Shown here one piece after another: positions 12,689 through 62,015 of a stretch of DNA of 64,000 nucleotides; position 1 is the stretch's first letter; every line of letters begins with the position of its first letter. The DNA is taken from the IMG/VR virus record IMGVR_UViG_3300042549_005931, positions 62,001 through 126,000 of that record; one strand, written 5' to 3'. The notes below the pieces were generated by a model. It saw only the letters and a program-made list of their open reading frames with translations. It had not been told where the DNA came from and did not search any database. Position numbers and translations under genes: made by a program.

Positions 12689-13936
12689 TTACTGAGTTTT
12701 TTTGTTATACCCGTACATCTTTTTCATCTTTTCAATTTCCTCATTGATAAGATTTGTTTTTAATACTTCAGACTCATTAACCTCTTTTGTAGGTGCTGGG
12801 TCTTTTTCATACATTGGAGCCTTTTCTTGTTCTTTTTCTTTTTTATTTGCTCTGTCTGCTAATTTTTTTCCTGTGTTAGTTGGAATAACGTTTCCCGCAT
12901 CGTGTGAATTACCCATTGTAGTATCACCATCTAATGCTTTCTTTAATCTTGCTTTAAACTCTTCTGATGGTTCGCTATCATAATCTAAATCCAATAATGT
13001 ACCACCTCTAAAGTTACTTACAAATTCATCTTCTTTTTCATCATTGTTAACCACAACCTTTTCTCCCTTTTTATTTGCTTCAGGGAATTCAGGATTACTT
13101 CCACCAGGTATTTCTAACTGACCTTTGATTTTTTTCTTTACATCATTTAAGTTAGCATCGTTCTCTTTACCACTTGCAGTACGTACTTTCTTTTGAGTTT
13201 CGATACCCGGTACCGCAGCTTCACTAACCATTTTACTAATTAATGCAACTAACTCAGATTCAGTTAAACGTAAAGTTTTCTTTTTAGATTCCATCATATT
13301 ACCTGAACACTCCGTACACATACCTTCTTCATTCATCATACCACCACACTCGTTACAAGTTTGTGACATTTCGTTAATTTCTTCTTCCATGTATCCGCTA
13401 CCACATTCATCACATTCTTCCTCTTCTTCTTTGGTATCTTGTTTTTGACCTCTAAGAATTTTGAAATCTTCAGCATCTATTTCACCATTATCATTTTTAT
13501 CCAGTTTCTTTTGTCCACCGATTAATTCTTCTTTAGTATCTTTTTTGTTACCTCTAAGAATTTCAAAATCCTCAGCATCAATTTTACCATTGTGATTCTT
13601 GTCTATTTTTTTTTGACCACCTTTTAATTCTTCTTTCATATCGTTGTTTTCTGTTTCTTCTAAATCTTCACCCATTTTATCTAATTTTTCAATCATATCA
13701 CCATGAGACTCATAATTTGCTTTCTCAATGATAAATTGTTTTCCCGGGTGTTCTTTTGCCAATTTATCAACATGTTCTTCAGCTTCTTCTTGTGTGTCAC
13801 AAGTAACAACAGGTTCACCTTCACATGTTACATGATATTTTTCCATCATACCACCGGTAGATTCTTTAAGAATACTTTTCTTAATTTCATCAAAAACGAT
13901 GCTTTCCATGATTGCGTTTAATTCTTCAACTTTCAT
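12689..13936 (-). CDS. Acidic putative head/internal virion protein with two EF-hand-like repeats and a Cys cluster
   Basis: DKNHNGKIDAED and DKNDNGEIDAED; CDECG, CNECGG, CTECSG; RLTESELVALI; TATTTAT box at 13941-13948. Confidence 0.55.
   Translation of the reverse strand: MKVEELNAIMESIVFDEIKKSILKESTGGMMEKYHVTCEGEPVVTCDTQEEAEEHVDKLAKEHPGKQFIIEKANYESHGDMIEKLDKMGEDLEETENNDMKEELKGGQKKIDKNHNGKIDAEDFEILRGNKKDTKEELIGGQKKLDKNDNGEIDAEDFKILRGQKQDTKEEEEECDECGSGYMEEEINEMSQTCNECGGMMNEEGMCTECSGNMMESKKKTLRLTESELVALISKMVSEAAVPGIETQKKVRTASGKENDANLNDVKKKIKGQLEIPGGSNPEFPEANKKGEKVVVNNDEKEDEFVSNFRGGTLLDLDYDSEPSEEFKARLKKALDGDTTMGNSHDAGNVIPTNTGKKLADRANKKEKEQEKAPMYEKDPAPTKEVNESEVLKTNLINEEIEKMKKMYGYNKKTQ
13430..13635 (-). 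repeat. Tandem 102-bp (34-aa) duplication encoding EF-hand-like units
   Basis: cctctaagaatt at 13449 and 13551; EEL.GGQKK.DKN.NG.IDAEDF.ILRG twice. Confidence 0.8.
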
Positions 13937-16011: not shown

Positions 16012-16617
16012 TTATCTTGGATTGCTAAAGAATACCCTAAAATTAAAAGAAGGGTTTATATCAGTATAAATACTTTCAAAATTGGATTTGCATACAATTC
16101 CGTTGAAATTAGATGCTTTTTCTAAGTATCCTTGTGACGGTACCGTTTGTTTATATATGTCATGTTTTTCACATAACATCTCACAGAGTTCTGCAAGTGA
16201 ATTTAATTGTGTTTCACCGTACTTATCCCAAAAATAATAGTTTCTCCAATTACGTATATGTGGTTCGGACCTATATGGGTCTCCAATCCAATTATGTAAT
16301 ATACCGGTGATTGTGTTTTTATTTAACCAACCCAAATTTTCAATGGCAATTTTTATTTGCTTTCTATCAACCTTAGGGTCGTCAAATGTATTTGAACTGT
16401 AGTCGGTGTCGTATAGTTGATAAACCATACCTAGCTTAGAAACAACAAAATGGGGTACGTCTTCGTACTTCCCATTTTTGCGATACTTTATCTTATTAAT
16501 AAAATCATCTACACGTCTTTGTGTATCATACAGTAAAATCTGTGTTTTTTTAGATTTTCTTTTATGTATGTTAAGTTGTTTGGTATCTAATGTTTCGACA
16601 TTAAAGATTTCTAACAT
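16012..16617 (-). CDS. N-acetylmuramoyl-L-alanine amidase (Amidase_2)-like protein, Zn ligands apparently degenerate
   Basis: PHFVV..LGMVYQL, IAIENLG, YGETQLNSLAELC..L...H.I, TDINPSF; expected His positions read LLYDTQ and VCKSN. Confidence 0.65.
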   Translation of the reverse strand: MLEIFNVETLDTKQLNIHKRKSKKTQILLYDTQRRVDDFINKIKYRKNGKYEDVPHFVVSKLGMVYQLYDTDYSSNTFDDPKVDRKQIKIAIENLGWLNKNTITGILHNWIGDPYRSEPHIRNWRNYYFWDKYGETQLNSLAELCEMLCEKHDIYKQTVPSQGYLEKASNFNGIVCKSNFESIYTDINPSFNFRVFFSNPR

Positions 16618-16719
16618 TTTATGATTTTTTATCGTCAACTTCCCAATATATGTTCTTATATCCTACTGAATTTAACGTTTCCTCCCGGTGGTTTTCTATT
16701 ATTTCTTCGGATGGTTCTG

Positions 16720-17937
16720 TTATTTTTTTTTTTCGTCAATTGCTTCATCAACAATATCTAACATTTTATCTAATTCCTTGGAGTCCGTTTGATAAATTGG
16801 TTCGTCATCTTTATCAATTGGGTCAATACCAATATCCCAAGATTCATCAACTTCGGGTATCTCATCTTCACCCATCGAATATGTTTGTTCTAAAGTTTTT
16901 TTATCTAAATTTTCTAAAAGTTCAATAGCATTTAAATAAGATTCGGGTGAAGATTCTTCCATAGCCTCCAAAATTTCCATTTGATTAAATTCCGCAATTG
17001 CTTGGTCAATTTCTTCATCAGTTAAATCAATTTCATTACTTTCCCAACTTTCAATTTTTTTTAATACTTCATCTTGTTTATCAAGATTTACAATATTTTC
17101 TTTTTCATCCTCCAATCTATATTCACTGTTAGCTAACGCACCAACAGGGTCTTCACTATCATCCTCATATCCTCGTATTTCATTTTGAATTTCTCCAATT
17201 TTTTTCATACGTTCAGCAATTCTTTTAAATTCAATTTTTTGTGCGCGTTCCAATATTTCTTCATCACTTAAAGTCACTTCATCTTTTAAGGAAGCTTTTT
17301 GAAGTTTTTCATATTCTTCTTTCGGTTTTCTATGTAATAGACGTTCTTCAAGTAATGTCAAATCTTCTTCAGACAATCTAACTCTTGAAATCTCCCCAAT
17401 TAAATCAGACGCATCTACTTTTGTTGGTTCTTCTTTCTCTTTTTTATCATCAACAACTAATTCAACTTGTCTTTCACCTTCACTGAATTTTACTAACATA
17501 TGAAGGAATGATAATGATATTAGTGGTAACATACCACCTGAGAAGAACGCCAAGAATCGTTTGTGTCCTATGAAGTCCGTAGGCTCCACCCCCGTTATTT
17601 CTAACAATGGTGATACTAGCTCAACCCAAGATTTAAACGAACTGGCGGTTACATCAATAAATGAATAAGCAAAGAATATATTGCCTATAAATTGTATTAA
17701 TGTAACGATACCGAATGGGAAATAAATTTTCTTTCCCATATTTGCCGAAATTGCGGCAAGTGCTGACAACGCTGCAATTTCAATACCTACTGATAGATAG
17801 ATTGCCCACGTAAAAGGATTTGATATACCGTACCATTGAGTAACGTGTGATATTGAAACCACCGCTACCGTAATGATTGGTATCAAAAACGCTAATATGA
17901 TTATCGTTTTGTAATTATTATGAAACCAAACTTTCAT
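16720..17937 (-). CDS. Multi-pass membrane protein with long acidic tail; possible -1 frameshift extension to 16619
   Basis: About four hydrophobic segments in the first 150 aa; ends GAA AAA AAA AAA TAA. Confidence 0.75.
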   Translation of the reverse strand: MKVWFHNNYKTIIILAFLIPIITVAVVSISHVTQWYGISNPFTWAIYLSVGIEIAALSALAAISANMGKKIYFPFGIVTLIQFIGNIFFAYSFIDVTASSFKSWVELVSPLLEITGVEPTDFIGHKRFLAFFSGGMLPLISLSFLHMLVKFSEGERQVELVVDDKKEKEEPTKVDASDLIGEISRVRLSEEDLTLLEERLLHRKPKEEYEKLQKASLKDEVTLSDEEILERAQKIEFKRIAERMKKIGEIQNEIRGYEDDSEDPVGALANSEYRLEDEKENIVNLDKQDEVLKKIESWESNEIDLTDEEIDQAIAEFNQMEILEAMEESSPESYLNAIELLENLDKKTLEQTYSMGEDEIPEVDESWDIGIDPIDKDDEPIYQTDSKELDKMLDIVDEAIDEKKK

Positions 17938-18203
17938 TATTTGTTAGATTCTAATTTTTTTATTTCTTCGTCAATCTGTGTTTGTCTTTGAACATCTAAA
18001 ATTTTTCTATCAGATGCTTGGATTGAACGTTTCTCGGATTTTAATCCTTCGATTTGCATTTGTTTATTTAAACGGCCTTCTAATTCGGTCATTTCTTTTC
18101 TAACCTTAGTTATTTCTCTTGTGTCACCACAACTTTTTAAAAAACCTAATAATGATATCACTAATACAATCATAGTGAATTTTTCTTCGATAAATTTTTT
18201 CAT
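17937..18203 (-). CDS. Membrane-anchored or lipoprotein coiled-coil protein (spanin-like?)
   Basis: Hydrophobic stretch ending FLKSC, then heptad-rich helix; TATTTATA at 18207-18214. Confidence 0.5.
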   Translation of the reverse strand: MKKFIEEKFTMIVLVISLLGFLKSCGDTREITKVRKEMTELEGRLNKQMQIEGLKSEKRSIQASDRKILDVQRQTQIDEEIKKLESNK

Positions 18204-18205
18204 GT

Positions 18206-19015
18206 CTATAAATAGTTTAATAGATTGAAACTCTCGTTTCTTAATTTCTTTATTGCCTTGTCTCTCAACTGTCTAATACGCTCTTTGGTACATCCAAACT
18301 CATCACCTAAGTCGTCTAAATTACATTCAATACCGTTTAATCCATAATATTTCTCGATAATAACTTTTTCTCTATCATCAAGTACGTTTAACATTTGAGC
18401 CACACGTTTTTTGATTTCTTCAGGAGTATTGAATATTTCTTCAGGATTTCCCGCATCCTTGTTTGGTATTAAATCAATCAATTGGTCACCATCTTCATTG
18501 ATTTCCTTAAACAATCCAACACAATATGGTAATGTGGTCGTATTGTCATTATTATTATCAATGTGGAACTTATCAATTTTATTTGTTTCGTTCTTCTTAT
18601 TTTTTTGAGCCTCTTGAACTAAGTTAGATGGTAGTCTAATTGTTCTTGCATTATCATTTAATGAAGCCATGATAGATTGTTTAACCCACCACACCGCATA
18701 TGATATGAATTTTAAACCACTTTTAGGGTCGAAACGTTCTGTTGCTTTGATTAATCCGATATTACCTTCTGATATTAAATCTAACAAGTCTAAACCCTGT
18801 CCTTGGTACATTTTGGCAACAGAAATAACAAATCTTAGGTTACCTAATACAAGTTCTTCTAATAATTTATCCTTTTCTTTCTTGGTTGTATTAGAATCAA
18901 GTAACAATTTAAATATTTCGTCTTGTCTTTGGTGACTTACGATGGGTATTTTACGAATGTCTTTTATATACTGATTTATTTCATCGGTACTGATAAGAAC
19001 GGCAGGTTTTCTCAT
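18206..19015 (-). CDS. RNA polymerase sigma-70 family factor (RpoD-like, no region 1.1)
   Basis: NLRFVISVAK.Y, DLISEGNIGLIKA.ERFDP..G.KFISYAVWW, RTIRLP, TKERIRQ...AIKKLR. Confidence 0.92.
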   Translation of the reverse strand: MRKPAVLISTDEINQYIKDIRKIPIVSHQRQDEIFKLLLDSNTTKKEKDKLLEELVLGNLRFVISVAKMYQGQGLDLLDLISEGNIGLIKATERFDPKSGLKFISYAVWWVKQSIMASLNDNARTIRLPSNLVQEAQKNKKNETNKIDKFHIDNNNDNTTTLPYCVGLFKEINEDGDQLIDLIPNKDAGNPEEIFNTPEEIKKRVAQMLNVLDDREKVIIEKYYGLNGIECNLDDLGDEFGCTKERIRQLRDKAIKKLRNESFNLLNYL

Positions 19016-20925: not shown

Positions 20926-23259
20926 CTACGAAATTTTTGTTGTGATAAAATCAATTGACGAGACATTCTCATCTTTCTTAATCATAATAAGATTATCCGA
21001 CCAGTTACGAATCAATGGATTATGAGAAATAACGATAATATGTTCAAAGTAGTTTTTAATCTTCTTAAAAAATTCACCAACCATTTCAAGGTTTTCATCC
21101 GCAATTTTGCCAAAGACTTCATCCATTACAACGATATTAGGCTTTGGTAATGATGAGATTTTGGTCAACACACTACGAAGTGCTAATGACGAAATTGTTC
21201 TTTCATAACCTGAACCGGCATTAAGAGGTTTTGCAATTCGTGATTCATTGTCAATCATAATGAATTCAACCTCATTCTTATCGTTAATGTTCATCTCCAA
21301 AATGAAATGACAACTATCAACTAATAAACGATATAGTTCTTGGTTAATTAACGGAACCATATTTTTAAGTATAACTTTTGAAATACCATTCTTACCATAA
21401 ACTGTAAGATATACTTTAAACACTTGCATCAATTCTTCCTCCGATTTAATTTTCTTGATTAAATCTTCGTTCACACCAATCTTTTCTTTCATATTGGTGA
21501 TGTTGTTCTTATGTTTCTCAGTATTTGTACCGTTTAAACGAATGTCAGCGTTTGCCGTTTCAATCTTGGTTCTAATACCAACAACCTCCGCGTCGATTTT
21601 ACGATTATCCTCAAGTTTCTTCTTGTTGTTCTCGTAATTGTCTAACTTTAATTGTTTTGCATCAATCTCAACTTGTTTTTGTTCAACCTCCAATTCATAA
21701 CGAGCTTGGATTAACTTATTTCTTTCATAAGCATCGAACTCATCTTTCAAACTTTTAAATGACTTATTCTTTTCTTCTAAATCATCTTGTTTGATTTTAC
21801 GTTCTTCACGTTTGTTTTTTAATGATTCAATAAGTTCTTTAATCTTATTAATCTCATCAGTATGGTCAACATCTTCAAGTGCTCTATTACATGTTGGACA
21901 TATAGAACCTTCCTCAAATTGTTTGATAAGTTTTTCATTTCTTGCAATGGCATCAACATCTAATTTATCCTCAACCAATAACGAGTTAATTTCTTTTTTA
22001 ATTAACTCATGTTCTTCTTCTAAATAATATTGAGATGGTTCTACAACGTTTACATTATTGGCGTTGGTTCTACTTGATGATTGTTTAGTTTTTAAATCCT
22101 TAATATCATTCTCAAGTTGATTTGGATTGGTATTAATTAGTTCGGTATCAATATTATTGTTTCTTGACCCGAGTAATTCATCTCTCCTATCCTCTAAACC
22201 TTTTAATGTTTTAGTATGTACATCTAGTTCATCAGCTAAAATAATTAGCAGTTCTTCTGAATTAGCTATACTATCACTATAAGTTTGGTTATCAATTTCT
22301 AATTGAGCAATGTTGTGAGTATTTGAAATTAATTTCTTACTCCAATCATTATAGATACCTTTAGCAACCTCTTCTTTTAATTTAAGAGACTCTAATCCCA
22401 TAAACTTAGTCAATATCTGTCCACGAGCGGTTGGCTTCGACTCAATCAATTCCTCGAGGTTATAACCGGTAGTTAAGATAGTTGACAAGAAGTCTTCCTC
22501 AGTACCAATAGCCGATTCAATAAACGCTTCGGTTTCTCTACGTTGTTCACCAGCTAAATTTTCAATTGTACCGTCTTCCTTACGTTTGTAAAACTCTAAC
22601 TTATTGGTAACGGTATAATCACCTGACTTTGATTTCTTTCTTAATGTTTTTCTTTCAATAACATAATCACCACCATCGATTGTAATTTCACCAGTTACAC
22701 TAACCTCATCTTTATCTGTGAATCGATTAAAGATTTCTGCATTGGTTTTGGTCTTAGTCGTTGAGTTAAAGAATAAGAACATTAATAGGTCTACGGTTGA
22801 AGTAGATTTCCCACCAAAGTTTTTAGGTGTGGACTCAACAACTGATATTCCATCCAAATTAGTAAAATCAATAACATTATTGTCCCCGAAAGATAGAAAA
22901 TTAGAAAACTCGACTTTCTTGATGAACCATTTGTTGTATCGTACTTTATTTTCATTTTGTTTTTCTATTTCTCCATTAACTCTATTATCTAATCTATCAA
23001 CAAGTTCCCATTTAGTAGTCATCTTATTCTCATCCATGAATTCCTTCATCAATGTTTTTTGATATTGACTATCTAAAATGTTATCCGAAACTTCTAATGA
23101 TTGTAATCGAGTATTTTGTACATTAGTTAAAGTCTTGGTAATGATTTGTACACTGGCTCCATTATACTTGTTCTGAAAGTATGACTTTACCCTTTTAATT
23201 TTCTCCGGTGTGAAATTTTCGGCAGTATCCTGCCAAGTTACCTTAATGAATGGACTCAT
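20926..23259 (-). CDS. sbcC: SbcC/Rad50 (T4 gp46-like) recombination ATPase
   Basis: NFLSFG, Walker A GGKST, coiled coils, CPTC zinc hook, GSGYE signature, VVMDE Walker B, ISH; ATGA coupling at 23256-23259. Confidence 0.9.
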   Translation of the reverse strand: MSPFIKVTWQDTAENFTPEKIKRVKSYFQNKYNGASVQIITKTLTNVQNTRLQSLEVSDNILDSQYQKTLMKEFMDENKMTTKWELVDRLDNRVNGEIEKQNENKVRYNKWFIKKVEFSNFLSFGDNNVIDFTNLDGISVVESTPKNFGGKSTSTVDLLMFLFFNSTTKTKTNAEIFNRFTDKDEVSVTGEITIDGGDYVIERKTLRKKSKSGDYTVTNKLEFYKRKEDGTIENLAGEQRRETEAFIESAIGTEEDFLSTILTTGYNLEELIESKPTARGQILTKFMGLESLKLKEEVAKGIYNDWSKKLISNTHNIAQLEIDNQTYSDSIANSEELLIILADELDVHTKTLKGLEDRRDELLGSRNNNIDTELINTNPNQLENDIKDLKTKQSSSRTNANNVNVVEPSQYYLEEEHELIKKEINSLLVEDKLDVDAIARNEKLIKQFEEGSICPTCNRALEDVDHTDEINKIKELIESLKNKREERKIKQDDLEEKNKSFKSLKDEFDAYERNKLIQARYELEVEQKQVEIDAKQLKLDNYENNKKKLEDNRKIDAEVVGIRTKIETANADIRLNGTNTEKHKNNITNMKEKIGVNEDLIKKIKSEEELMQVFKVYLTVYGKNGISKVILKNMVPLINQELYRLLVDSCHFILEMNINDKNEVEFIMIDNESRIAKPLNAGSGYERTISSLALRSVLTKISSLPKPNIVVMDEVFGKIADENLEMVGEFFKKIKNYFEHIIVISHNPLIRNWSDNLIMIKKDENVSSIDFITTKIS

Positions 23260-23864
23260 ATGTTTTTGTTTTCTATCCAATTACCATTTACTAAATCTAA
23301 TGTTTCAACATCTGAACGTTGAAAACATCTGAATGGTTCGTATTTTCCTGAATTGTGGGCGTAAATCATTTTTTTCTCAAATTTTCCATCAAAAACAGTT
23401 TTGGGTCTTATAATAATCATTTGAGTTAATTGTCTATTTGTCCTAATATATATATTGTTTTTATATGTTGGGTTGTCTTTTTGTTTAAAGATTGGTTTTT
23501 TATTTTTATCAGGTTCTAAATTAACCCAATAAGTTGGTTTGTACCATTTATCTTTTCTTTCCGGCATATTAACATGTGGGTAATCTAATTCTTTAGATTT
23601 ACGTGAATAATATTCATCCTCCCAAAAATTATTATCCCAACCACCATGTTCTAATTCAACACCAAATGTTCCATCAACCGATAATAAATCAACACCCATT
23701 TCATCGGGGTTAATATATAAATCCCAATTAAATAATCTTTTTAAAATTATTATCATTTGTTCTTTCACATACGAATCATCATATGCTATTACATTTTTTG
23801 AACCATCTTCATTGACCAGATTATTATGATAATTCTCTGCGGTTCTCGCTTCCGTATTTGACAT
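23256..23864 (-). CDS. Hypothetical protein, possibly PD-(D/E)XK-fold endonuclease
   Basis: E...GVDLL.....GVELEH pattern; lies between sbcD and sbcC. Confidence 0.4.
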   Translation of the reverse strand: MSNTEARTAENYHNNLVNEDGSKNVIAYDDSYVKEQMIIILKRLFNWDLYINPDEMGVDLLSVDGTFGVELEHGGWDNNFWEDEYYSRKSKELDYPHVNMPERKDKWYKPTYWVNLEPDKNKKPIFKQKDNPTYKNNIYIRTNRQLTQMIIIRPKTVFDGKFEKKMIYAHNSGKYEPFRCFQRSDVETLDLVNGNWIENKNI

Positions 23865-27477: not shown

Positions 27478-27521
27478 ACTCGAAAGGTAAGGAAAATATT
27501 CGAGAAAAAAAAATTGAGCAT

Positions 27522-34810: not shown

Positions 34811-37800
34811 TTACACCGTTATTATATATGCAGTTGTTTCTGTACAACCATTATTATCGGTAACTTTAACATAATAATAACCTGCCGTAACACTACTAAA
34901 TGTTACATTTGATGTATCAGTTAATGTGTCAACTACACTACCTCCACCAACTTCGTATGGTGCTGAGAAATCTTGATACAATTCAAATGTTTTACCACCT
35001 GAAGCACCACCTGAAACGGATGCATAAATTTGGTCAAATGCAGTTTTTTGTGCAAATATTCCAAGTGCACTTGGTTGTGTTATTGTACGAGAATATTCTT
35101 CAACTTTACCCGCACTATCTTTAATATAAACAGTGTACGTACCTGCAGGTACATTATATGTTGTTGATGAGGTCCAATTTGTATATGTGGTATAAACACT
35201 ACTTAATTTAGTTTGGAAAGTTCCGCCACTTCCACCTGTTACGTTAGTGATAGTTATCGTACCGTCATTTCCATTACACGCCGCATTTGCACTTGATACT
35301 GTTGCGGTTATACAAATTGATTCATATAATGTTACGGTTTTGTCAGTATAAACACTAGTATTACAATTAGGACTTGCATTGTAAACCCTTACAGTGTATA
35401 CTTGACTACCGCCTAAACCGTTTATATATCCAGTATCAATTGTTGCATTTCCACTACCATTTATAGTTCCATCAGGTGATGTACAACCATTATTTGTACA
35501 TGAGAATGTTGCACCATTACAATATCTATAAAAGTCACCAGGGTTTCCACCTGTAATTAAAAGTTTACCAGTCGTACTTGTACCATTCGTAACACAATTT
35601 GGTTGTGTTGTACCCAAATTAAATATTGGGTATGATAAGATTGTTATATCGGTTGTTGTTGCGGCAGCACTTCCGCCAGTACCATTTAATACCACATAGA
35701 ATGATTCACTACCTTCAGATAATCCGTCAGATGAAATTGTTAATGTAAATGTACCCGTATTACTATTAATTGTAACATTTCCACTTGTTGCACTTGAGAA
35801 ATCGGCAGATGATGTTGTTCCATTATAACCAACATACCAACCAAGTGACGTTCCATTTCCAATATCTGTTGTATTAACTGTCAATGTTATAGTATCACCC
35901 TCAGCAACAGTATATGCCGATGATGTGATGCCATATGTTGGTTCCGCAACATTATTAACACTAATTGTAAATTGTTTTTCTGTGTATAGTCCACCTTGGT
36001 CAGTTGAACGAACTCTAATTGAGTATGACGATTTGGTTTCATAATCAAAAACAACTGAATTTCTAAGTGAGCTTCCTGAAATATTAAAGCTACTATTATC
36101 TCCACTACCTGTTCCCGCAACTAATGTATATGTAAATGAGTTACCTGAATCGGGGTCAATTGTTTGGAAGGTACCAATTGATGTGTTTATTGATGTGTTT
36201 TCATTTTGTGAACTATTACTTAATATAATATCTGTCGGTGTTTCATTAACATTATTTACATATATCGTAAAATCTTTCTCGTAATATAAACCACCTCCGT
36301 CTGTTGAACGAATTCTAATTGAGTAAGATGATTTTGATTCATAGTTAAATGTTCCGTTAGTGAATAAATCATCTCCCGTAATTGCAAAACTACCATTATC
36401 CACACCACCTGATGCAAATGAATATGTAAATATATTAGTACCATCAGGGTCAGTTGTTGAGAACGTTCCAACAAATGTTGTTGAACTTGAATTTTCATTA
36501 ACATATACATTAGTTAAACTAATATCTGTTGGCGATTCATTTACATTATTAACACCAATTGTAAATTGTTTTTCGTTATATAAACCTCCTTGGTCTGTTG
36601 AGCGAACTCTAATCATATACGCGGTTTTAGACTCGTAGTTAAAAACTATAGAATTTCTAAGAGCGTTTCCTGAAATATTGAAACTACTATTATCATCACT
36701 ACCTGTTCCCGCAACTAACGTATAAGTGAATGTGTTACCCACATCAGGGTCACTTGTTGAGAAAGTACCAATTGTAGTATTAATCGATGTATTTTCATTT
36801 TGTGAGGTATTACTTAAATTAATATCTGATGGTGTTTCATTAACATTATTAACAAATATTGTAAATTGAGCTTCTACATATAATCCACCTTGGTCTGTTG
36901 AGCGAACTCTAATTGTATATGATGATTTAGTTTCATAATCCAAAAATACAGTATTTCTTAGTGAGCTTCCTGAAATATCAAAACTACCATTATCTCCACT
37001 ACCAGTTCCTGTCACTAATGTATAAGTAAATGTGTTACTTGCATCAGGGTCAGTTGTTGAGAAGGTTCCAATTGTTGTATATTGTGCTGAACCTTCATTA
37101 ATATTGTTAGTACTTAACGATATTGACGCTGGTGTTTCGTTCACATTACTAATGGTTATAGTGAATATTTTTTCAAAAAATTGTCCAAGTGAATTGGTTG
37201 AGCGAACTCTAATTGAGTACGATGACTTAGCCTCAAAATTATAAACTTCAGAACTTCTTAACTGTGTTCCTGATATGTTAAAACTACCATTATCACCACT
37301 ACCCGTTCCTGTAACTAATGTATATGTATACGTCTCAGTAATTGGACTTGCGGTTTGTGATGAGAATGTTCCAATAACATAATTTATTGAACTATTTTCA
37401 GGTATTGATTCACTCGATAATGAAATACCATTTGGTGGGTATGGTGACGGTGTCGGTGTTTGTGTTGGTGTTCTTGTTGGCGTAACAGTATTTGTTGGCG
37501 TTTGTGTTCTCGTTGGCGTAACAGTATTTGTAGGCGTAACAGTATTTGTAGGTGTAACAGTGTTTGTTGGTGTTTGTGTTGGTGTTCTCGTTGGTGTAAC
37601 AGTATTTGTTGGTGTTTGTGTTGGTGTTCTCGTTGGTGTAAAAGTATTTGTTGGTGTTTGTGTTGTTGTTGGTGTAAACGTATTTGTAGGTGTAACAGTG
37701 TTTGTTGGTGTTTGTGTTGGTGTTCTTGTTGGCGTAACAGTATTTGTTGGTGTTTGTGTTGTTGTTGGTGTAAACGTATTTGTAGGTGTAACAGTGTTTG

Positions 37801-40800
37801 TTGGTGTGGTCGATGGCGTGAAAGTAGGTGTTGGTGTAACAGTATTTGTTGGTGTTTGTGTTCTCGTTGGTGTTACAGTTGGGGTAACCGTATTTGTTGG
37901 TGTTACAGTACTTGTTTGGGTTGGAGTTGGGGTTGGTGTAGGTGTTACACACGGTGCGGTTGATGTAACTTGAGAGTTACCACTAACATCGGTAATAGTT
38001 AATACATTACCACTACCGTCACTTTTTCTAATAAAAAACGTGGAAACTCCTGTAGTACCTAAAGTTGTATTTAATTCAGCAATAGTCCAAGCATCGGTAC
38101 CATCTGGTGACTGATATAAAAATTCATTTAATTCCAATGGTTGGTCAGCGTCATAAATTAAAATTTGTGTACTCGGTGAATAACAAACCGTATATGAATC
38201 TGTTGAAATATAGTAATATGCCCCATCAAGTGGATTAGACGTTGATGGTGTTATAGTAGGTGTAACGGTACTTGTAGGTGTAGGTGTTTGTGTTCTTGTT
38301 GGCGTAACAGTATTTGTTGGTGTCACCGTATTTGTTGGTGTTTGTGTTCTCGTTGGTGTAACAGTGTTTGTTGGTGTAGTTGATGGTGTAAAAGTAGGTG
38401 TTGGTGTAACAGTTGGGGTCGTAGTTGTAGTTGGTGTTGGTGTTGGAGTACGCGTAGGTGCGACATAACAACCACCAAGTGATAATATTGAAATTTGTGC
38501 AATGTTATTTTGGTCTTCAACTCTAGTTGACCCCTTTAACGTACCATAAAATACCCCCGTATTAATTGTATATATACCCTGAGATACTTCTTCATATATC
38601 GTTGTATATGTTTCATCAAAATATTCAATAAATCCACCTGAATTAACAATATACGTGATACCGGTATATGCATCACAAATTGTTGGTGGAACACATTCAC
38701 TATATGTACCTATATTAAATGTAACCCTATTAAATGGATTTGGGCTATTAAATGATGTAATTGTTACATTTGATATATCATTAAAATTCAAATCGGGTAA
38801 TGGTATAAATTTTTCACTTTCATCACTTAAAAAATTAACCGTTACCGTGGAATATAATACACTACTACCCGTATATATATTTGCATTAAAATTAACTCCA
38901 ACATATGAAACTGTTTGTCCGCTTTGCGAATCCTTTATTATAAATTTAACACCATTATCACTTAAATCACTACAAATTTCTTCTGAATCAATAACTAAAA
39001 TACTTGATTGAAAATAACTAAAAATTGTACTATCGAATGGATAAATTTCACGGTATAAACTATCGGCAGCTTCGGTGTAATCGTATGTTGATAGGTTATC
39101 ATCATACAAATAAAATGTTTCTTGGGTTGATAAATTATTTATAAATCCTCTAACAACGAGTGGGTCACTATAGAACGATGATTCATTCCAATTATTAATT
39201 ATATTGATGTTGGTATTACCGTCAAATATTAAATTATCTCGATTATTCGATGTTGCAAACCAAGCACTTGTATAATTTAAGTTTGTGTTTGAAACACTGT
39301 ACGTTCCGGTAGTTCCGGAAACTGAAGAATCCCCACTATTTACCCATAATAAAATATCCGTAACTATACCATTTGTTAATTCATAAATTTTTCTATAATA
39401 TGTTTCATCGATAACCGAATAATATCCATTTAACACACTATAAAATCCATCTCTTTCATAATATAATTTTTTACCAATTGTAACACCTTGTGTATCTGAA
39501 TTATCATAAAATAATGTATAAATATTTTGTATATTTTCTACTTTTATTTCATGTGTGAAATATGTGATAATACTGGTTACACCTGGTTTTGATTTAAATG
39601 GTAATTCTCCCGTTGTTCCAGTTAAAGATATTAAATAATTATTTGCTTGACTGTCAGCATCTTCAATTGAAATTGTTGATTCTATTAATCCACGAGGAAC
39701 AACAATTTTTTTAGGTATAAAGACATTTAAATCTCCAATTTTTTTAGTGGTAGTTGTTAATTCAAATGTTATTTCATTATTAGTATATCCACTAGCAGAT
39801 TTTTCAGGAACACCCATAGTATAACAAAGTAATATTTCACTATTATACTGTGTATCATAAAAAACCGGTGATGAATCGGGAACTGTTGATATTTTAAATA
39901 AATCTAAACTATATTCACGTACTGTATTTAAAGCATATGATACCTCTCTGGACGTTATGACTCCTGTATTTGAAATTGTATAAAAATAATCTCCGTCACA
40001 TAATGTGGTATAATAATTTTCATATGGAGTAGAACTATGTTCATTACCTGTAGTAAAATCGGCGTGTTTATAAATTGTTATTCCAGGTTTTAAATATGGC
40101 GTTGTTGTATATCGTCTTCTTAATACTTTAGAATCTTCAAACACATCTTTATTTGTTCCAAAAATACTATACAAAAATCCTAATAAAGCACCAACAATTG
40201 GTATTGAATTTAAAAAGCTAAAAATACCGAGTGCTAGAAATGCATCAGCTATATTGTCATATGTTGTTTTTGACTTAAATCCCTCACTATCACCCCCATA
40301 AAGAAAATATGACGCAATTGCTTTAACAACAGCATGTCTACTCCCCGGTATTGGAATATGTTTTTCCTCATTATAATTGTAAATTGTAAAAGCATTATTA
40401 CTGGCTAAATGTGGTGTTGAATTTGACACACCAAGAAAATATGAATAAACTATTGGTTGTGTTAAAGTACTTGGGGTAATAGTTTTAGTTATCGTTGCAT
40501 TAAATTCCGGAAGTTTAAAATCTATCGCACTCCAAAATGCCCTATCATATGAAGGTGTAATTGTTAAATCGGTGGTAAAAACATTTGTTTGTGGTATGAA
40601 TGTAAAATCTTTAGGCCCGTTATATATTGGTGTTGCTTTTAGAGGTTTAAGGAACTCATTTTTAAAATTATAATCAACTTTTGTTCCGTAAGTTCTTTTT
40701 ATGTCACCCAATCCAAGTTTATAAATGAGATTTGTATTATATATTGCGCCATAATAATATGGTAGGCATCCCCATTCAAAAAATGGGTCATTAAATACAA

Positions 40801-42145
40801 CACAATTTGACGTAAAGGTAAAGGAGGTTGGCCAATTCTCTATCAACACAGGTGTGTATACTCGTGTGATTACTTTTGGGTTATAGTATGAATCGTATGG
40901 TGAATATGGGTGAAGTCCAAGTCTATAATTATAAATTTCGGTACCACAAGGAGCATCAATTTCATAGGGTGTATTTGGGGGGTCAGCACAATCATCCCTT
41001 GTATTTATTGGATATTCAGTTGCCACTCTAAGATGAACCATTCCGGTTATGGTTACTATACTAACAGTTTCATTCGCTTCAAATAGTGTATCAAACCTTA
41101 CTTTATTAAAATCACAACCACCACCAACACTAAGTTGTCCAGGTTCATCTAAATTTAGACCATCACCAACTGTAAAAAAAACTCGACGAGTTCTTTGCGG
41201 AGTTGTTGGAATTTTATTTACACTTATTTGAACTAATCTATGATTTGTTGGATAATGAAAAATATAATCGACAATTTGATATTTGTATCCATTTGTTTTA
41301 ACGTTAGTGGCATTTCGATAATATGGATGTGGAACCATTTTACAAGGTATTCCACCACCACTAAAAGATTCATCCCTACATTGGTTTGAAAATCTATATT
41401 CGGTACTACATGTATAAGCCACCATGGTGTGTGATACATTATTATATACATAATAAAAAATGATAGGTGTGGCAACACTAGCCCTCAACTTTGAGTTATC
41501 GTAATGTGTTTTAGGTACAAAAGTGTCACCGTTAGATACTTCATTAGCCAATAAATCATCATAATACCACCTACTATTTATGTAACTGTTATTTGAAGAA
41601 CTATCTGTTTTTTCTTTATATAATGTGACAACTTGAGGACATGTTGTACATACATAATCATTATTAGTATATCCACTACAAAATTCTTCAAAGTATATCG
41701 GAGGGTCACAATCAAATTTTATTTTAAAACTTCCTGAAGTACCACCCGTGGTCTTAAAATCTATGGTAAAATAAATGTCATTTGTGTTATCGACATCTAC
41801 TGAAAAATGAAAGTACTTATTAACTGCAGTTGGTAAAGTATTAATGTCAATTGTTGAAATTACCAAATCTTTACCATTAACTAATTGTTTTATGTAAATA
41901 ATGGTATTTGCTCCACCCATACTTATGGGTGTCATTGTTAATCTAATTAATTTGCGTAAAGAAGGTGGGGTTGTTGATACGTCTTTTTTTAAATCTTTTA
42001 ATTCATTGTATTTTAAAAAAAAAGTGGTGCCTGACACATGTAATCCTTGAGTGCTCCATGTTAAAGTTTTTTCAACACCACATTCATTTGCTATGGGTGT
42101 TGAACTATCAATAGGTACCGGACAATTAAAATTAAATTCACTCAT
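34811..42145 (-). CDS. Giant adhesin-like protein: Thr/Pro stalks, five cadherin-like repeats, Calx-beta-like and SprB-like modules
   Basis: Five units of EN...IGTFS..DPD...FTY.LV...DN.SF.I.G..L......YE.KSSY.IRVRSTD.GG...EK.FTI.VNNVNE.P; VAEGD...[10 protein letters not shown]; CNGNDGTI...GG...YTVYIKD. Confidence 0.8.
37445..37950 (-). repeat. Thr/Pro coding repeat ([12 protein letters not shown])
   Basis: Degenerate 18-bp units gttggtgtaacagtattt; a second block lies at about 38240-38460. Confidence 0.9.
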
Positions 42146-57225: not shown

Positions 57226-59649
57226 TCAAGAACCACATCCTTCACACTCAAATGGTGAATCCGATGGTCGTTCAATTGTCATCTCAACCTCCGGTGTACT
57301 TTCACTAATCAACGAATTGTTAGTTGGTGTTGCGTAAACTTGTGGAGTTTCAACAGGTTTAACCGTTGATGTGTCAATACCTAATCCTTTCATCGCATCA
57401 ACAGCCGATGTTGAACGTAGATAGTACATACCCGTTTTTAAACCTAATTTCCATCCGTGTAAGTGTGCCGCCAATAACTTAGCTTTGTTTACACCACTAA
57501 TAAATAAATTCATTGATTGAGATTGGTCAATATAAACACTACGATTAGCGGCCATGTTTAATATTTTCTTTTGTGACATCTCCCATACTGTTTTATAGAT
57601 TTCTTTCAATTCAGTCGGAACCTCAGGGATGTTTTGGATAGAACCATTTTCCATAATGATTTTATTCTTAATCTCCTCATTCCATAAATCATGTTTAAGT
57701 AAATCCTTAACTAAGTGTTGGTTAATTACCACAAATTCTCCACCCAATGTTCTTCTTGCATATAGGTTTGTTGTGAATGGTTCAAAACATTCGTTGTTAC
57801 CCAAGATTTGTGCGGTAGATGCTGTTGGCATTGGCGCAACTAATAATGAGTTTCTAACACCATTGTTAACCACCTCTTTACGTAAGGATTTCCAATCCCA
57901 ACGACCTGAAGTATCTTCATCAGTTTTACCCCACATTTGATATTGGAATTCACCACGTGAAATTGGTGACCCATCAATTGATTCGTATGGACCATGTAGT
58001 TTAGCCAAATCTTTTGAAGATGTTAATGCTGCAAAATAGATTGTTTCAAAAATATCAGTTTGTAATGTGTCAGCTTCGTCCGACTCAAATGGTAATCCTA
58101 AAATACAGAACACATCTGCCAAACCTTGAACACCCAAACCAACCGGTCTATGTCTAAAGTTTGATAACTTTGTCTCCGCAGTTGGATAAAAGTTTAAATC
58201 AATTACGTTGTTTAAGTTCTTTACAATTTGGTATGTTGCATCATATAATAATTGATGGTCGAATTGTCCATCAACAATGTATTTTGGTAATGCAATTGAT
58301 GCTAAGTTACAAACCGCTTGTTCAGTTGGTGAACTATACTCAATAATTTCAGTACATAGGTTAGAAGACTTAATAGTACCTAAATTCTTTTGATTTGATT
58401 TATAGTTCGCAGCGTCTTTGTATAACATATAAGGAACACCGGTCTCAATCTGTGCCGTTAATATATCATCCATTAACTTTCTTGCCTTAATTGTTTTACG
58501 ACCTACACCTTGTTGTTCATATGATTCATATAACTCAGTGAATTTCTTTTCTTCCGGTGTATCATATACATCAGATAAACCCGGTGCTTCATCAGGTGAG
58601 AACAACGTCCAATTACCATCCTCTTCTACACGTTTCATAAATAAATCGGGTGTCCATAAAGCTAAGAACAAATCACGAGCACGTAATTCTTCCTTACCGT
58701 GATTTTTTCTTAATTCAATAAATTCAACAACATCAGCGTGCCATGGTTCCAAGTATACCGCAAATGAACCTTTACGTTTTCCACCTTGGTTAATCCAACG
58801 AGCAACTTCGTTATAAGTTTTCATCATTGGTAATAGACCGTCAGATTCTCCACCTGTTCCCTTAATATAAGAACCTTTAGCACGAACATCGTGTACGTGT
58901 AATCCGATACCACCAGCCCACTTAGAAATCTTTGCCACATCACCTAATGTATTAAACAATCCATCAATATCATCACCTTTGTTACCAATTAAGAAACAAG
59001 AAGACATTTGAGGTCTTGGTGTGCCGGCATTAAACAGCGTTGGCGTCGCATGTGTGTAATAATGCTTGGATAAATCATCATAGATTCTTAATCCTTCTTC
59101 AAGATTAAAGTTACAAATACCTAACGCGACTCTCATATAAAGGTATTGTGGTCTCTCTACAATTTTTTGTCCAATCTTAATAAGATAAGAACGTTCCAAA
59201 GTTTTGATACCGAAATAATCGAAATCAAAATCTCTATCCATAACAATTGCGGAATCAATCGCTTCTCTGTTTTCTAATACAAACTTATAAAGTTGTGTAT
59301 CAATTAATGATGATTGTTTTCCTGTTCTTGGCTCAATGAATGAATGTAATTCTTTAATACACTGTGAAAACTTTTTTGGTGTTGACTTGTGTAGACTTGA
59401 TACTTCAATTCTACCAGCCAACTTAGAATAGTCAGGGTGAGTTGTGGTCATTGCAACCGCAGTCTCTGCCGCTAACTTATCTAATTCAATTGTTGAAATA
59501 CCATCATAGATACCTTGTGTTACTTTTAATGTAACATAGGTAGGGTCAATGTATTCCATATTTAAATCATGACATAAAATACTAATCCGTTTAGTAATCT
59601 TGTCATATCTCATTTCCTCAAGGGAACCGTCGCGTTTTTTTACTTTCAT
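57226..59649 (-). CDS. nrdA: Ribonucleoside-diphosphate reductase class Ia alpha subunit with ATP cone
   Basis: VKKRDG cone, ATPTLFNAG, SSCF, SNLCTEI, VCNLAS, PTAS, GLKTGMYY, C-terminal CEGC. Confidence 0.97.
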   Translation of the reverse strand: MKVKKRDGSLEEMRYDKITKRISILCHDLNMEYIDPTYVTLKVTQGIYDGISTIELDKLAAETAVAMTTTHPDYSKLAGRIEVSSLHKSTPKKFSQCIKELHSFIEPRTGKQSSLIDTQLYKFVLENREAIDSAIVMDRDFDFDYFGIKTLERSYLIKIGQKIVERPQYLYMRVALGICNFNLEEGLRIYDDLSKHYYTHATPTLFNAGTPRPQMSSCFLIGNKGDDIDGLFNTLGDVAKISKWAGGIGLHVHDVRAKGSYIKGTGGESDGLLPMMKTYNEVARWINQGGKRKGSFAVYLEPWHADVVEFIELRKNHGKEELRARDLFLALWTPDLFMKRVEEDGNWTLFSPDEAPGLSDVYDTPEEKKFTELYESYEQQGVGRKTIKARKLMDDILTAQIETGVPYMLYKDAANYKSNQKNLGTIKSSNLCTEIIEYSSPTEQAVCNLASIALPKYIVDGQFDHQLLYDATYQIVKNLNNVIDLNFYPTAETKLSNFRHRPVGLGVQGLADVFCILGLPFESDEADTLQTDIFETIYFAALTSSKDLAKLHGPYESIDGSPISRGEFQYQMWGKTDEDTSGRWDWKSLRKEVVNNGVRNSLLVAPMPTASTAQILGNNECFEPFTTNLYARRTLGGEFVVINQHLVKDLLKHDLWNEEIKNKIIMENGSIQNIPEVPTELKEIYKTVWEMSQKKILNMAANRSVYIDQSQSMNLFISGVNKAKLLAAHLHGWKLGLKTGMYYLRSTSAVDAMKGLGIDTSTVKPVETPQVYATPTNNSLISESTPEVEMTIERPSDSPFECEGCGS

Positions 59650-60635: not shown

Positions 60636-62015
60636 TTAAATTGTTTGATTTTCTCTTTGTTGTCTAGCCCTAAACGCTTCTACCGCTCTGTTTGCTCTGT
60701 CTTGTGTCTTTTGTTCTTCATGACCAAGTAAAGTATTTTGACTATCGGTATCAATAATTAACATTTTATTATCGAATTTACAATTTTGGAATATAATTCC
60801 ATCTTGTCCAATACGTGATTTTAATAAACTTAACGTTGCTAAGTTATGTTCTTTCTGTTCTAATGTCTTAGCTATAGAAATAATAACGTGTGCAATTTGA
60901 GCTTTCTTAATTGAACCACCCATTTGGTCACTTGTTACAACCTCTGATGAGATTGAATCTCTACTACCTTGTGTCGCCGTCCAAATCGCCATGTTAAACT
61001 CAGTTGTCATAGATTCAAGACTTCTCATAACAGAACCCTCGCCTTTCCATTCTTCACCGTTAACACTCTTATCTGTACTAACACAGTCAACATAATCCAA
61101 AATCAACATATCAGGTACAAATCCTTCTGAGATTAGTTTTCTAATTTTTGATTTAATCTTAGATACGGTTGCGTCATCACTTGACATCTTAATCATTTTC
61201 AAAACACCTTTAGAACGAGCCTGAGCTTCAAGTACCTTTTCTTTTACCTCCTCAGCGTATTCAGGTTGGTCATCCGGTTCAACATTTGTCCAAATGGTAA
61301 AGTGTTTTCTTCTTACGTTATCACGATTATCTTCAAAGAAGATTTGTAACACATTGAAGTCATTGTTAAATGCGGTGTTTGCAAACTTGGTTAAGATTGT
61401 TGTCTTACCGGTACCAGTCGGTGCCAAGATAATACCCAATTCACCACGTCCCAATCCACCTTTCAATAAATTATCAATACCCACAATACCTGTTGGGATT
61501 GGTAATCTAAAATCTTTTTCTAATGCCGAATCAATATCATGAAACACATCAACAATATCATTATCATCGGTACCAACTTGTAATGCCTTCTGAATGATTT
61601 GTTCTATTTTATGGTACTCCTCAAAGTTACCATTTTCAATAATGTGGTTAACGTTTTTTAATTCCTTTTTAAGATTTTGTTGCTTACAGAAGTTCAACGC
61701 TCTGTCTTTTACAAAGTGTGTGTCTTTGTCATCGTTTTTGATTTGCTCTAACGTGTCAATGTGAATACGGTTTGAATCCTTATTCCCACTTTCCGACATG
61801 ATTTTTTGAGCAATTGTATCATAATTTGGAATCTTCCCATAAGATGAATACAATTCTTTCACATTTTCGATAATATATCTAAATGAATTGTTATCAAAAA
61901 ACTTTGTTTCCAAAACTTCGATAATGGTATCACCATATTTTCTATCCTCAATAATCGCTTTTAACAACGATTGTTGAAAGGAAAATCCTAGGTGTCCAAA
62001 ATTTCTTTCTTCCAT
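60636..62015 (-). CDS. dnaB: Replicative helicase (DnaB/T4 gp41-like)
   Basis: PTG...ID..L.GG...GEL, APTGTGKT, ILDYVD, WTATQ, LKSR.G. Confidence 0.9.
   Translation of the reverse strand: MEERNFGHLGFSFQQSLLKAIIEDRKYGDTIIEVLETKFFDNNSFRYIIENVKELYSSYGKIPNYDTIAQKIMSESGNKDSNRIHIDTLEQIKNDDKDTHFVKDRALNFCKQQNLKKELKNVNHIIENGNFEEYHKIEQIIQKALQVGTDDNDIVDVFHDIDSALEKDFRLPIPTGIVGIDNLLKGGLGRGELGIILAPTGTGKTTILTKFANTAFNNDFNVLQIFFEDNRDNVRRKHFTIWTNVEPDDQPEYAEEVKEKVLEAQARSKGVLKMIKMSSDDATVSKIKSKIRKLISEGFVPDMLILDYVDCVSTDKSVNGEEWKGEGSVMRSLESMTTEFNMAIWTATQGSRDSISSEVVTSDQMGGSIKKAQIAHVIISIAKTLEQKEHNLATLSLLKSRIGQDGIIFQNCKFDNKMLIIDTDSQNTLLGHEEQKTQDRANRAVEAFRARQQRENQTI

Follow-up and report, generated by a model that had tools for sequence, protein, structure and literature searches.

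Organisation of the locus

The sequence analysed is a 64,000-nt window (positions 62,001 to 126,000) of IMG/VR record IMGVR_UViG_3300042549_005931, from the 269-kb, 32% GC genome of an uncultured lake-water giant phage. A row of minus-strand genes (Table 1) contains a membrane-protein gene, here called ORF0, which ends GAC GAA AAA AAA AAA TAA and therefore carries an uninterrupted run of eleven A's immediately before its stop codon. The -1 frame remains open beyond this stop up to the neighbouring amidase-like gene, and so fills a 102-nt gap that is unusual in this gene row, where neighbouring ORFs abut or overlap. The extension contains no ATG, GTG or TTG, and the -1 frame is open for only 1 codon upstream of the run. 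Logan contigs of four sequencing runs from four studies, one of which may be the source sample, cross the run with 0 gaps, indicating that A11 is not an assembly slip of this record, although contigs hide minority variants.

Table 1. Features of the locus, with positions in the window.
Feature	Position	Strand	Description
Sigma factor gene	18206..19015	-	Phage sigma-70-type factor (Pfam Sigma70_r2 and r4, PHROG 351)
Upstream gene	17937..18203	-	88-aa protein with an N-terminal hydrophobic segment (followed by ...LKSC) and a coiled-coil-like rest; no family match
ORF0	16720..17937	-	405-aa protein with four predicted N-terminal membrane helices (about residues 8-149) and a 255-aa acidic C-terminal region (80 D+E, 35 K+R); ends EKKK-stop
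Predicted hairpin	16733..16754	-	8-bp nascent-RNA hairpin (3 G-U pairs, 6-nt loop); 3' arm ends on the first A of the run
A11 run	16723..16733	-	Proposed slippage site (T11 on the + strand)
+1 frame tail	16656..16724	-	22 codons plus TAA; basic peptide ending NVKFSRI; would give a 426-aa form
-1 frame tail	16619..16723	-	34 codons plus TAA (16619-16621); holds the family motif IYWE-x-DD; ends 1 nt before the amidase ATG; would give a 439-aa form
Amidase-like gene	16012..16617	-	201-aa N-acetylmuramoyl-L-alanine amidase-like protein (Pfam Amidase_2 PF01510, E 1.3e-6)

The ORF0 protein has 4250 homologues, all uncultured or viral, and an atlas search gave only unnamed viral clusters, but it matches no Pfam or PHROG family; relatives give a weak TacA1/RHH-like hit at residues ~171-216, which we do not interpret. 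An AlphaFold model of residues 1-230 is a helical bundle (pLDDT 69.5), for which Foldseek found no solved structure with E at or below 0.001; in BFVD, two uncharacterised homologues passed E ≤ 0.001 and a 'transmembrane protein' followed at 1.6e-3. No match to the locus was found among 50,697 phage records searched at the DNA level, while a protein search found only one distant uncultured 462-kb phage (LR756500.1), without the run and with a different neighbouring gene, not an amidase. An initial reading of the sequence alone had placed ORF0 in a lysis-like cassette. ORF0 encodes four predicted membrane helices and lies next to an amidase-like gene, but no Pfam, PHROG or fold match to any holin was found and 405 aa is long for a holin; the lysis cassette remains a guess.

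Conservation of the A-run and of both alternative frames

Taken alone, the window is not significant. At the genome's off-frame stop density of about 0.073 per codon, 34 open codons have P of about 0.08, and a first-order Markov model expects about 4 A/T runs of length 11 in this genome, of which one is seen, and it is the longest homopolymer in the genome. The significance comes instead from conservation in relatives. In 89 unique related loci ORF0 ends at an uninterrupted run (A9 in 10, A10 in 59 and A11 in 20, none shorter), with the 0 frame stopping 0-12 nt after the run and the -1 frame, which has no start codon and is closed just upstream, often by a TGA overlapping the 5' edge of the run, remaining open for 33-132 codons. 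This frame always ends at, or 26-35 nt inside, the amidase gene; in most relatives the amidase ATG lies 26-35 nt (mostly 29-32) before the stop of the -1 tail. Of 93 unique long-form loci, 88 need the shift to reach the long tail. The remaining five encode it in frame, yet these still keep an A9-A12 run with the same three frames rotated (long tail, stop, basic tail).

In relatives the -1 frame evolves as coding sequence beyond its first ~20-38 codons. Downstream of the +1 stop, differences by codon position in 32 disjoint pairs are 120/92/332, with a synonymous:nonsynonymous ratio of 285:259 against 87:449 and 75:457 in the other frames, although these pairs are not all phylogenetically independent. 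The tail in the window is homologous to the long tails, its IYWE motif corresponding to their D-L-Y-W-E motif, but in the window's own subclade it is a truncated version, in which only the last ~12 codons are specific to the -1 frame and contain too few substitutions to test (about 4/3/7 by codon position). Over the whole 33 codons the -1 frame gave only a weak signal (dN/dS 0.64). A family-wide tail motif, R-N-V-x-N-S-R-R-R, was rejected as independent evidence for this frame because it overlaps the first ~10 amidase codons.

The weak signal in the subclade prompted us to examine the +1 frame, which overlaps the first 22 codons of the -1 tail in the window and is also under purifying selection. 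Between the run and its stop, differences by codon position in this frame are 52/31/99 in the family and 7/6/21 in the window clade, the latter with a synonymous:nonsynonymous ratio of 22:12 against 5:29 in the -1 frame (p=0.002). The signature persists in loci without any +1 start codon (70/41/90, p=1e-4). The -1 frame nevertheless stays stop-free through this dual-coding stretch, despite the off-frame stop density given above.

A predicted hairpin abuts the 5' edge of the run

Folding of the region 16600-16800 as a whole was not more stable than shuffled sequence (z 0.46), but a small predicted hairpin lies directly upstream of the run, with 96.9% of cells paired in 16 clade members. Family-wide, a hairpin abuts the run in 61 of 86 loci, compared to 5-22 of 86 in control windows, with a mean MFE of -6.9 against -1.7 to -2.6 kcal/mol (Wilcoxon 1e-15). 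The hairpin lies inside coding sequence, and its covariation within the window clade is not significant (175 of 500 shuffles). In contrast, no enrichment of structure was observed in the 60 nt downstream of the run (mean z -0.40 over 86 loci).

Putative mechanism of slippage

The sequence-only reading proposed programmed -1 frameshifting or transcriptional slippage at the run, two isoforms of a membrane protein and possible coupling to the next gene. Our comparative data support the run as a conserved recoding site, and favour the transcriptional alternative with probably three products rather than two, because the +1 tail is also under selection. In the most likely mechanism, the bacterial RNA polymerase realigns on the homopolymer, whose length matches the RNA-DNA hybrid, as the nascent hairpin forms behind it, yielding mRNAs with 10, 11 or 12 A's. 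Faithful A11 mRNA would give the 405-aa protein, A12 mRNA would put the -1 frame in phase and terminate ribosomes 1 nt before the amidase ATG, and A10 mRNA would put the +1 frame in phase. The sigma-70-type factor encoded nearby implies that the host's multisubunit RNA polymerase transcribes at least part of the phage genome. That no run is shorter than 9 is consistent with this mechanism, as this is the length at which selection against slippage-prone runs appears in many bacteria (PMC1088944), and hairpin-stimulated slippage is described for a Roseiflexus IS element (PMC5009743). As no RNA run holds this phage and there are no protein data, the transcriptional nature of the slip, the production and use of all three forms and the coupling of the long form to amidase translation are inferred, and we would put the probability of this reading at roughly 0.6.

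Classical -1 ribosomal frameshifting seems less likely, but the same sequence could act at translation, or at both levels. The run holds an in-phase A AAA AAA heptamer followed by a stop, on which ribosomes could slip back one base, while a +1 or -2 slip or ribosome sliding, which iterated AAA codons cause in E. coli (PMC4363877), would give the basic tail; the conservation data fit any slippage at the run. However, no run of 7 or 8 occurs among the 89 loci, although 7 would suffice for tandem slippage, and the only enriched structure sits upstream, where it would act on the polymerase. The genome does not use Shine-Dalgarno sequences (10 of 234 genes), making an upstream stimulator of this type unlikely, and the use of both alternative frames is more natural for polymerase stuttering. 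Some phage shifts need no stimulator, so its absence lowers this reading but does not exclude it. It is also doubtful that the +1 tail in the window is an independent 30-aa basic peptide gene, leaving only the -1 tail dependent on slippage. An ATG does lie in this frame at 16748, 5 codons before the run, and 32 of 86 loci have an ATG and 16 more a GTG or TTG shortly before the run, but ATG arises automatically from GAT GAx (Asp-Glu/Asp) codons of the acidic ORF0. Moreover, 38 of 86 loci have no start codon there, mostly with a +1 TAA at the run's edge, yet keep a conserved +1 peptide with a coding signature, and within the window clade the ATG is lost or followed by TAA in three loci in which the tail is conserved.

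Phase variation at the DNA level, in which replication slippage changes the run length and each genome makes only one form, appears improbable. Homopolymers are hypermutable (PMC1088944), one relative has A12 with the long tail in frame and four other lineages also have the long tail in frame. A free-running contingency locus should, however, show all registers at comparable frequency in consensus assemblies, whereas 88 of 93 unique long-form loci sit in the same 'stop' register, 15 of 16 members of the window clade have exactly A11 (one has A12), and the contigs of four runs show no indel, with the caveat that minority variants cannot be seen in assembled contigs. That nothing is recoded, the gap being an ordinary spacer or a decayed gene end, the open frame chance or A11 a sequencing error, is compatible with the statistics of the window alone and with the dN/dS of 0.64, but is contradicted by the agreement of independent assemblies and by the conservation of run, frames and hairpin in 89 loci of very different sequence. 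Neither did a sigma-70 promoter scan find a promoter-like site on the gene's strand in the gap.

More speculatively, the hairpin and run may form a terminator-like module that makes the host polymerase produce n-1, n and n+1 transcripts in a set ratio, with only the n+1 class delivering ribosomes to the start of the amidase gene. The slippage ratio would then fix the stoichiometry of three isoforms and of the cell-wall enzyme, perhaps acting as a lysis timer, and lineages that moved the long tail into the default frame while keeping the run would show that the ratio is tunable by evolution. We regard this three-way C-terminal switch as possible rather than probable.

Comparison with characterised slippage systems

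Programmed transcriptional slippage is well documented in RNA viruses, IS elements and a few bacterial genes, but in the papers searched we found no description of it for this phage family or for a membrane-protein and amidase gene pair. In Shigella flexneri type III secretion genes, slippage at a homopolymer gives a fraction of product with a C-terminal extension (112 aa for spa13), the end of which overlaps the start of the next gene, and slippage affects that gene's expression (spa13/spa32, PMC5009743), while mxiE needs one extra nucleotide to fuse two ORFs (PMC1088944). The extension described here similarly ends at, or inside, the next gene, but the host is a dsDNA phage, the protein family is unrelated, the default frame stops at once, a second alternative frame is conserved and a hairpin abuts the run; no experimental data exist for the phage gene. 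The Roseiflexus IS630-type transposase (Penno et al. 2015, as described in PMC5009743) also has a hairpin forming directly behind the RNA-DNA hybrid over a slippery homopolymer, in a terminator-like layout, and a shift into a frame with no start codon of its own. The slippery motif there is U5C4 in the RNA and the product a transposase, compared to A9-A11 here, where insertion and deletion products both appear to be used. In Thermus thermophilus dnaX a run of nine A's gives mRNAs in all three phases and products differing at the C-terminus (PMC1088944), but the faithful mRNA gives the long product and both alternative frames merely stop, while in the phage gene the faithful mRNA stops and both alternative frames encode conserved tails.

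Access to two alternative frames with functional C-terminal ends from one viral slippage site is known from paramyxovirus P/V/W and potyvirus P3N-PIPO/P3N-ALT (PMC8204654, PMC4552492, PMC4761962, PMC5009743), although these are RNA viruses with viral RNA-dependent polymerases and short G or A runs, whereas the dsDNA phage presumably uses the host's multisubunit polymerase. If both alternative frames are used, this is a rare case of a DNA-virus gene read in all three phases from one site. The tail assembly chaperone G/GT of tailed phages likewise has a minor long form arising by a -1 shift near the 3' end (PMC5009743), but that shift is ribosomal, on a heptamer such as G GGA AAG, and occupies a fixed position before the tape-measure gene. 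Long A tracts at which 12-50% of transcripts gain or lose bases are found in the AT-rich genomes of insect endosymbionts (PMC5009743), and two length variants arise from an interrupted gene in Citrobacter rodentium tssM (PMC4256274); those are read as rescue of decay or of an interrupted gene, while here the out-of-frame layout itself is conserved across a deep clade. The host probably does not use Shine-Dalgarno sequences and may belong to Bacteroidota, hosts in which recoding is barely explored, and the site offers about 90 natural variants of a hairpin-plus-run module for studying how bacterial polymerases slip. Gene callers always truncate the protein at the run, so two conserved tails are missing from every database entry of this large family.

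The A-run and its flanking frames

The 405-aa ORF (ORF0) lies on the minus strand and ends GAC GAA AAA AAA AAA TAA. Read one base back, the frame continues for 34 codons (the -1 tail, P0122) to a TAA, after which a single A precedes the ATG of a 201-aa Amidase_2-like gene (PF01510, E 1.3e-6). The extension contains no ATG, GTG or TTG and its frame is closed one codon upstream of the run, while the 102-nt gap it occupies stands out in a row of genes that otherwise abut or overlap. Contigs assembled from four public lake-water runs of four studies, one of which may be the source sample, cross the run with no gap, so A11 is reproducible, although contigs cannot show minority variants. Taken alone, the window is not significant: 34 open codons have P of about 0.08 at the off-frame stop density of the genome, and an A/T run of 11 is not unexpected in a 32% GC genome, though it is the longest homopolymer in these 269 kb.

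Coordinates of the features discussed, as window positions
Feature	Position	Strand
ORF0, 405 aa	16720..17937	minus
A11 run	16723-16733	minus
TAA ending the -1 tail	16619-16621	minus
ATG of the Amidase_2-like gene	16617	minus
Predicted helix at the run, 8 bp with three G-U pairs	16733-16754	
Region of the overlap between -1 tail and amidase seen in most relatives	16588-16617	
Terminator-like G+C-rich hairpin followed by a T-rich stretch on both strands, inside the amidase ORF	16452-16471	
88-aa protein just upstream of ORF0	17937-18203	minus
Three other A/T runs of 9, inside long ORFs (the 415-aa EF-hand/dockerin-like ORF, a 343-aa ORF, and the 2444-aa cadherin-domain ORF)	13606-13614, 27505-27513, 42015-42023	
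2444-aa protein with cadherin domains	34811-42145	minus
Class I ribonucleotide reductase large subunit with an ATP cone	57226-59649	minus
784-aa protein with a sub-threshold SMC_N-like match (23.6 bits vs 40 cut-off)	20926-23280	minus

The window is part of a 269-kb IMG/VR virus record and carries a sigma-70-type factor and a prohead protease next to the gene. Shine-Dalgarno cores are depleted upstream of genes (10 of 234 against 7.6% background) and leaders are A-rich, which suggests, but does not show, a Bacteroidota host. A/T runs of 9 or more are fewer in this genome than a Markov model expects (21 against about 41). The 405-aa protein has four predicted membrane helices followed by a 255-aa acidic region, and its 4250 homologues all come from metagenomes or uncultured phages. 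Searches for a family, fold or named relative found none, and its function is unknown. In the relatives P0042, P0084 and P0097, a weak match to the C-terminal half of Pfam TacA1 (ribbon-helix-helix antitoxin, E 1e-5 to 1e-6) lies just after the last membrane helix, at residues ~171-216 (about 165-205 of the window protein), but the window protein itself does not reach the threshold.

Conservation of the run and the -1 frame

The listed close homologues that reach the C-terminus end ...EKKK, with the exception of one (protein P0041) that carries the extension in frame, while more distant homologues end EKKN, EKKNP, LKKK and the like. Of 170 loci collected, 132 are unique around the end of the gene, and 89 of these carry an uninterrupted A-run at the end of ORF0: A9 in 10, A10 in 59, A11 in 20 and none shorter. 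In all 89 the 0 frame stops 0-12 nt after the run and the -1 frame is open for 33-132 codons. That frame has no start codon and is closed just upstream of the run, often by a TGA that overlaps the 5' edge of the run. It ends at the amidase gene; in most lineages the amidase ATG lies 26-35 nt (mostly 29-32) before the stop of the extension, whereas in the window's subclade a TAA sits 1-4 nt before the ATG. In most relatives the last ~10 codons of the -1 tail (R-N-V-x-N-S-R-R-R-x-x-R) and the first ~10 codons of the amidase (M-L-E-I-Q-D-V...) are the same nucleotides in two frames (loci L005-L162), an overlap that the window's subclade has removed.

The long extensions share a motif D-L-Y-W-E-x-D-D-x-N-P-N-Q, of which the window's IYWEVDD is the truncated counterpart, and a sister subclade (loci L087, L169 and L170) has 53 codons with the full end. 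To assess selection we compared 32 disjoint sequence pairs over the part of the extension beyond the +1 stop and before the amidase ATG. Differences fall 120/92/332 on codon positions 1/2/3 of the -1 frame, with synonymous:nonsynonymous counts of 285:259, against 87:449 and 75:457 in the other frames. That part is coding.

A third frame after the run

In the window's subclade the 33 codons of the -1 tail gave only a weak signal (dN/dS 0.64, with most variation at second positions), yet the same bases read in the +1 frame unexpectedly gave 0.22. The +1 frame after the run is open for 22 codons in the window (the +1 tail, P0121, a basic peptide ending NVKFSRI) and for 14-38 codons in most relatives. 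Lineages share recognisable motifs, with 33 of 60 unique tails fitting [NHG]-x-[KR]-[FILVW]-[STDN]-[RIV]-[ILFV].

Codon-position differences and substitution counts between the run and the +1 stop
Set	Differences at positions 1/2/3 of the +1 frame	Syn:nonsyn, +1 frame	Syn:nonsyn, other frames
25 disjoint pairs, whole family	52/31/99	101:81	46:136 (-1), 26:156 (0)
Window clade alone	7/6/21 (p=0.002)	22:12	5:29 (-1)
Loci with no start codon in the +1 frame	70/41/90 (p=1e-4)	80:121	55:146 (-1), 36:165 (0)

In 38 of 86 loci there is no ATG, GTG or TTG in the +1 frame before the run, and most of these have a +1 TAA at the edge of the run; the coding signature is retained in this set, although its pairs partly share branches. 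The -1 frame stays stop-free through the same stretch in every locus, although off-frame stops occur at 0.073 per codon. The first 20-38 codons after the run thus appear to be dual-coding, constrained as the +1 tail and kept open as the linker of the -1 tail.

Evolutionary pattern

A tree of the membrane domain separates a 'short' clade from the 'slip' clade. The short clade has 34 loci of 218-305 aa with no run and an in-frame end ...RLSY-x-RRDA that overlaps the amidase ATG. This in-frame C-terminus ([KR]-L-S-Y-x-R-R-D-A; short-clade loci L036-L081) resembles the +1 tails of the slip clade ([KR]-F-S-R-I) and the K-I-I-S-R-N end of the long tails; the basic tail may be the ancestral C-terminus, though the motifs are too short to test. 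The slip clade has 88 loci that need the shift and 5 with the long tail in frame, one of which (L082) has A12 and belongs to the window's own clade. Those five still carry an A9-A12 run, and the three frames keep the same cyclic order of long tail, stop and basic tail, with only the default differing. Keeping the run where it is not needed to reach the long tail argues that the run itself is the selected feature. Two of the in-frame relatives (L026 and L141) carry a second A10 run about 100 codons upstream of the homologous one, at codon ~255 and again after GAAG, while L012 has an A9 and an A10 run 18 codons apart.

Origin of the slippage

It is highly likely that the run is a programmed recoding site, and three points favour the RNA polymerase as the machine that slips. 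The minimum run length is 9, the length at which selection against slippage-prone runs appears in many bacterial genomes (PMC1088944), whereas seven would suffice for tandem tRNA slippage. The 33 nt before the run fold with a mean MFE of -6.9 kcal/mol (mean z -2.65), against -1.7 to -2.6 in five control windows of the same genes (paired Wilcoxon 1e-15), and in 61 of 86 loci the 3' arm ends within 3 nt of the run, against 5-22 of 86 in controls. Stem sequences differ between lineages, and the layout is that described for nascent stem-loop-stimulated slippage in a Roseiflexus IS element (PMC5009743). The helix predicted in the window is paired in 96.9% of cells across the clade, but its covariation is not significant. 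The 60 nt downstream of the run show no excess structure (mean z -0.40). Finally, both alternative frames look used, as expected when a polymerase both adds and omits a base.

Ribosomal slippage or sliding on A-runs is real (PMC4363877) and may contribute; no RNA data exist to decide. Free DNA-level phase variation is argued against by the stable run length within lineages and by the finding of 88 of 93 loci in the same register. In the window itself an ATG lies 5 codons before the run in the +1 frame (P0123), so an independent 30-aa ORF cannot be excluded here; however, that ATG is not conserved in the clade, and it arises automatically from GAT GAx (Asp-Glu/Asp) codons. We put the probability that the slip is mainly transcriptional, and that the scheme set out below holds, at about 0.6.

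Putative products and comparison with known systems

In this scheme, we infer that A10, A11 and A12 transcripts give 426-, 405- and 439-aa forms that differ only in their cytoplasmic C-terminal end, the topology being our reading of the predicted helices by the positive-inside rule. That all three forms are functional remains a tentative suggestion. Ribosomes on the A12 class would terminate at the amidase start, so part of amidase translation could be coupled to the slippage ratio, in parallel with Shigella spa13/spa32 (PMC5009743), although A-rich leaders may also allow independent initiation. A role in lysis is speculative. The gene order, a small TM plus coiled-coil protein followed by the 4-TM protein and then the amidase, is suggestive, but no holin or spanin family is matched and a distant homologue sits in another context. 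The small upstream protein has an N-terminal hydrophobic segment followed by ...LKSC (lipobox-like) and a coiled-coil-like remainder, and could be a spanin-like partner, but no family matched.

Slippage of this class is already known from spa13 and mxiE, IS630-type elements, dnaX of Thermus, paramyxovirus P/V/W and potyvirus PIPO, while we found no prior description of the present case in the literature searched. What differs here is the setting, a large family of uncultured freshwater giant dsDNA phages and a membrane-protein and amidase gene pair, together with a default frame that stops at once, the apparent use of both alternative frames with a dual-coding stretch, a conserved hairpin-plus-A-run module, and rotation of the default frame in a few lineages.
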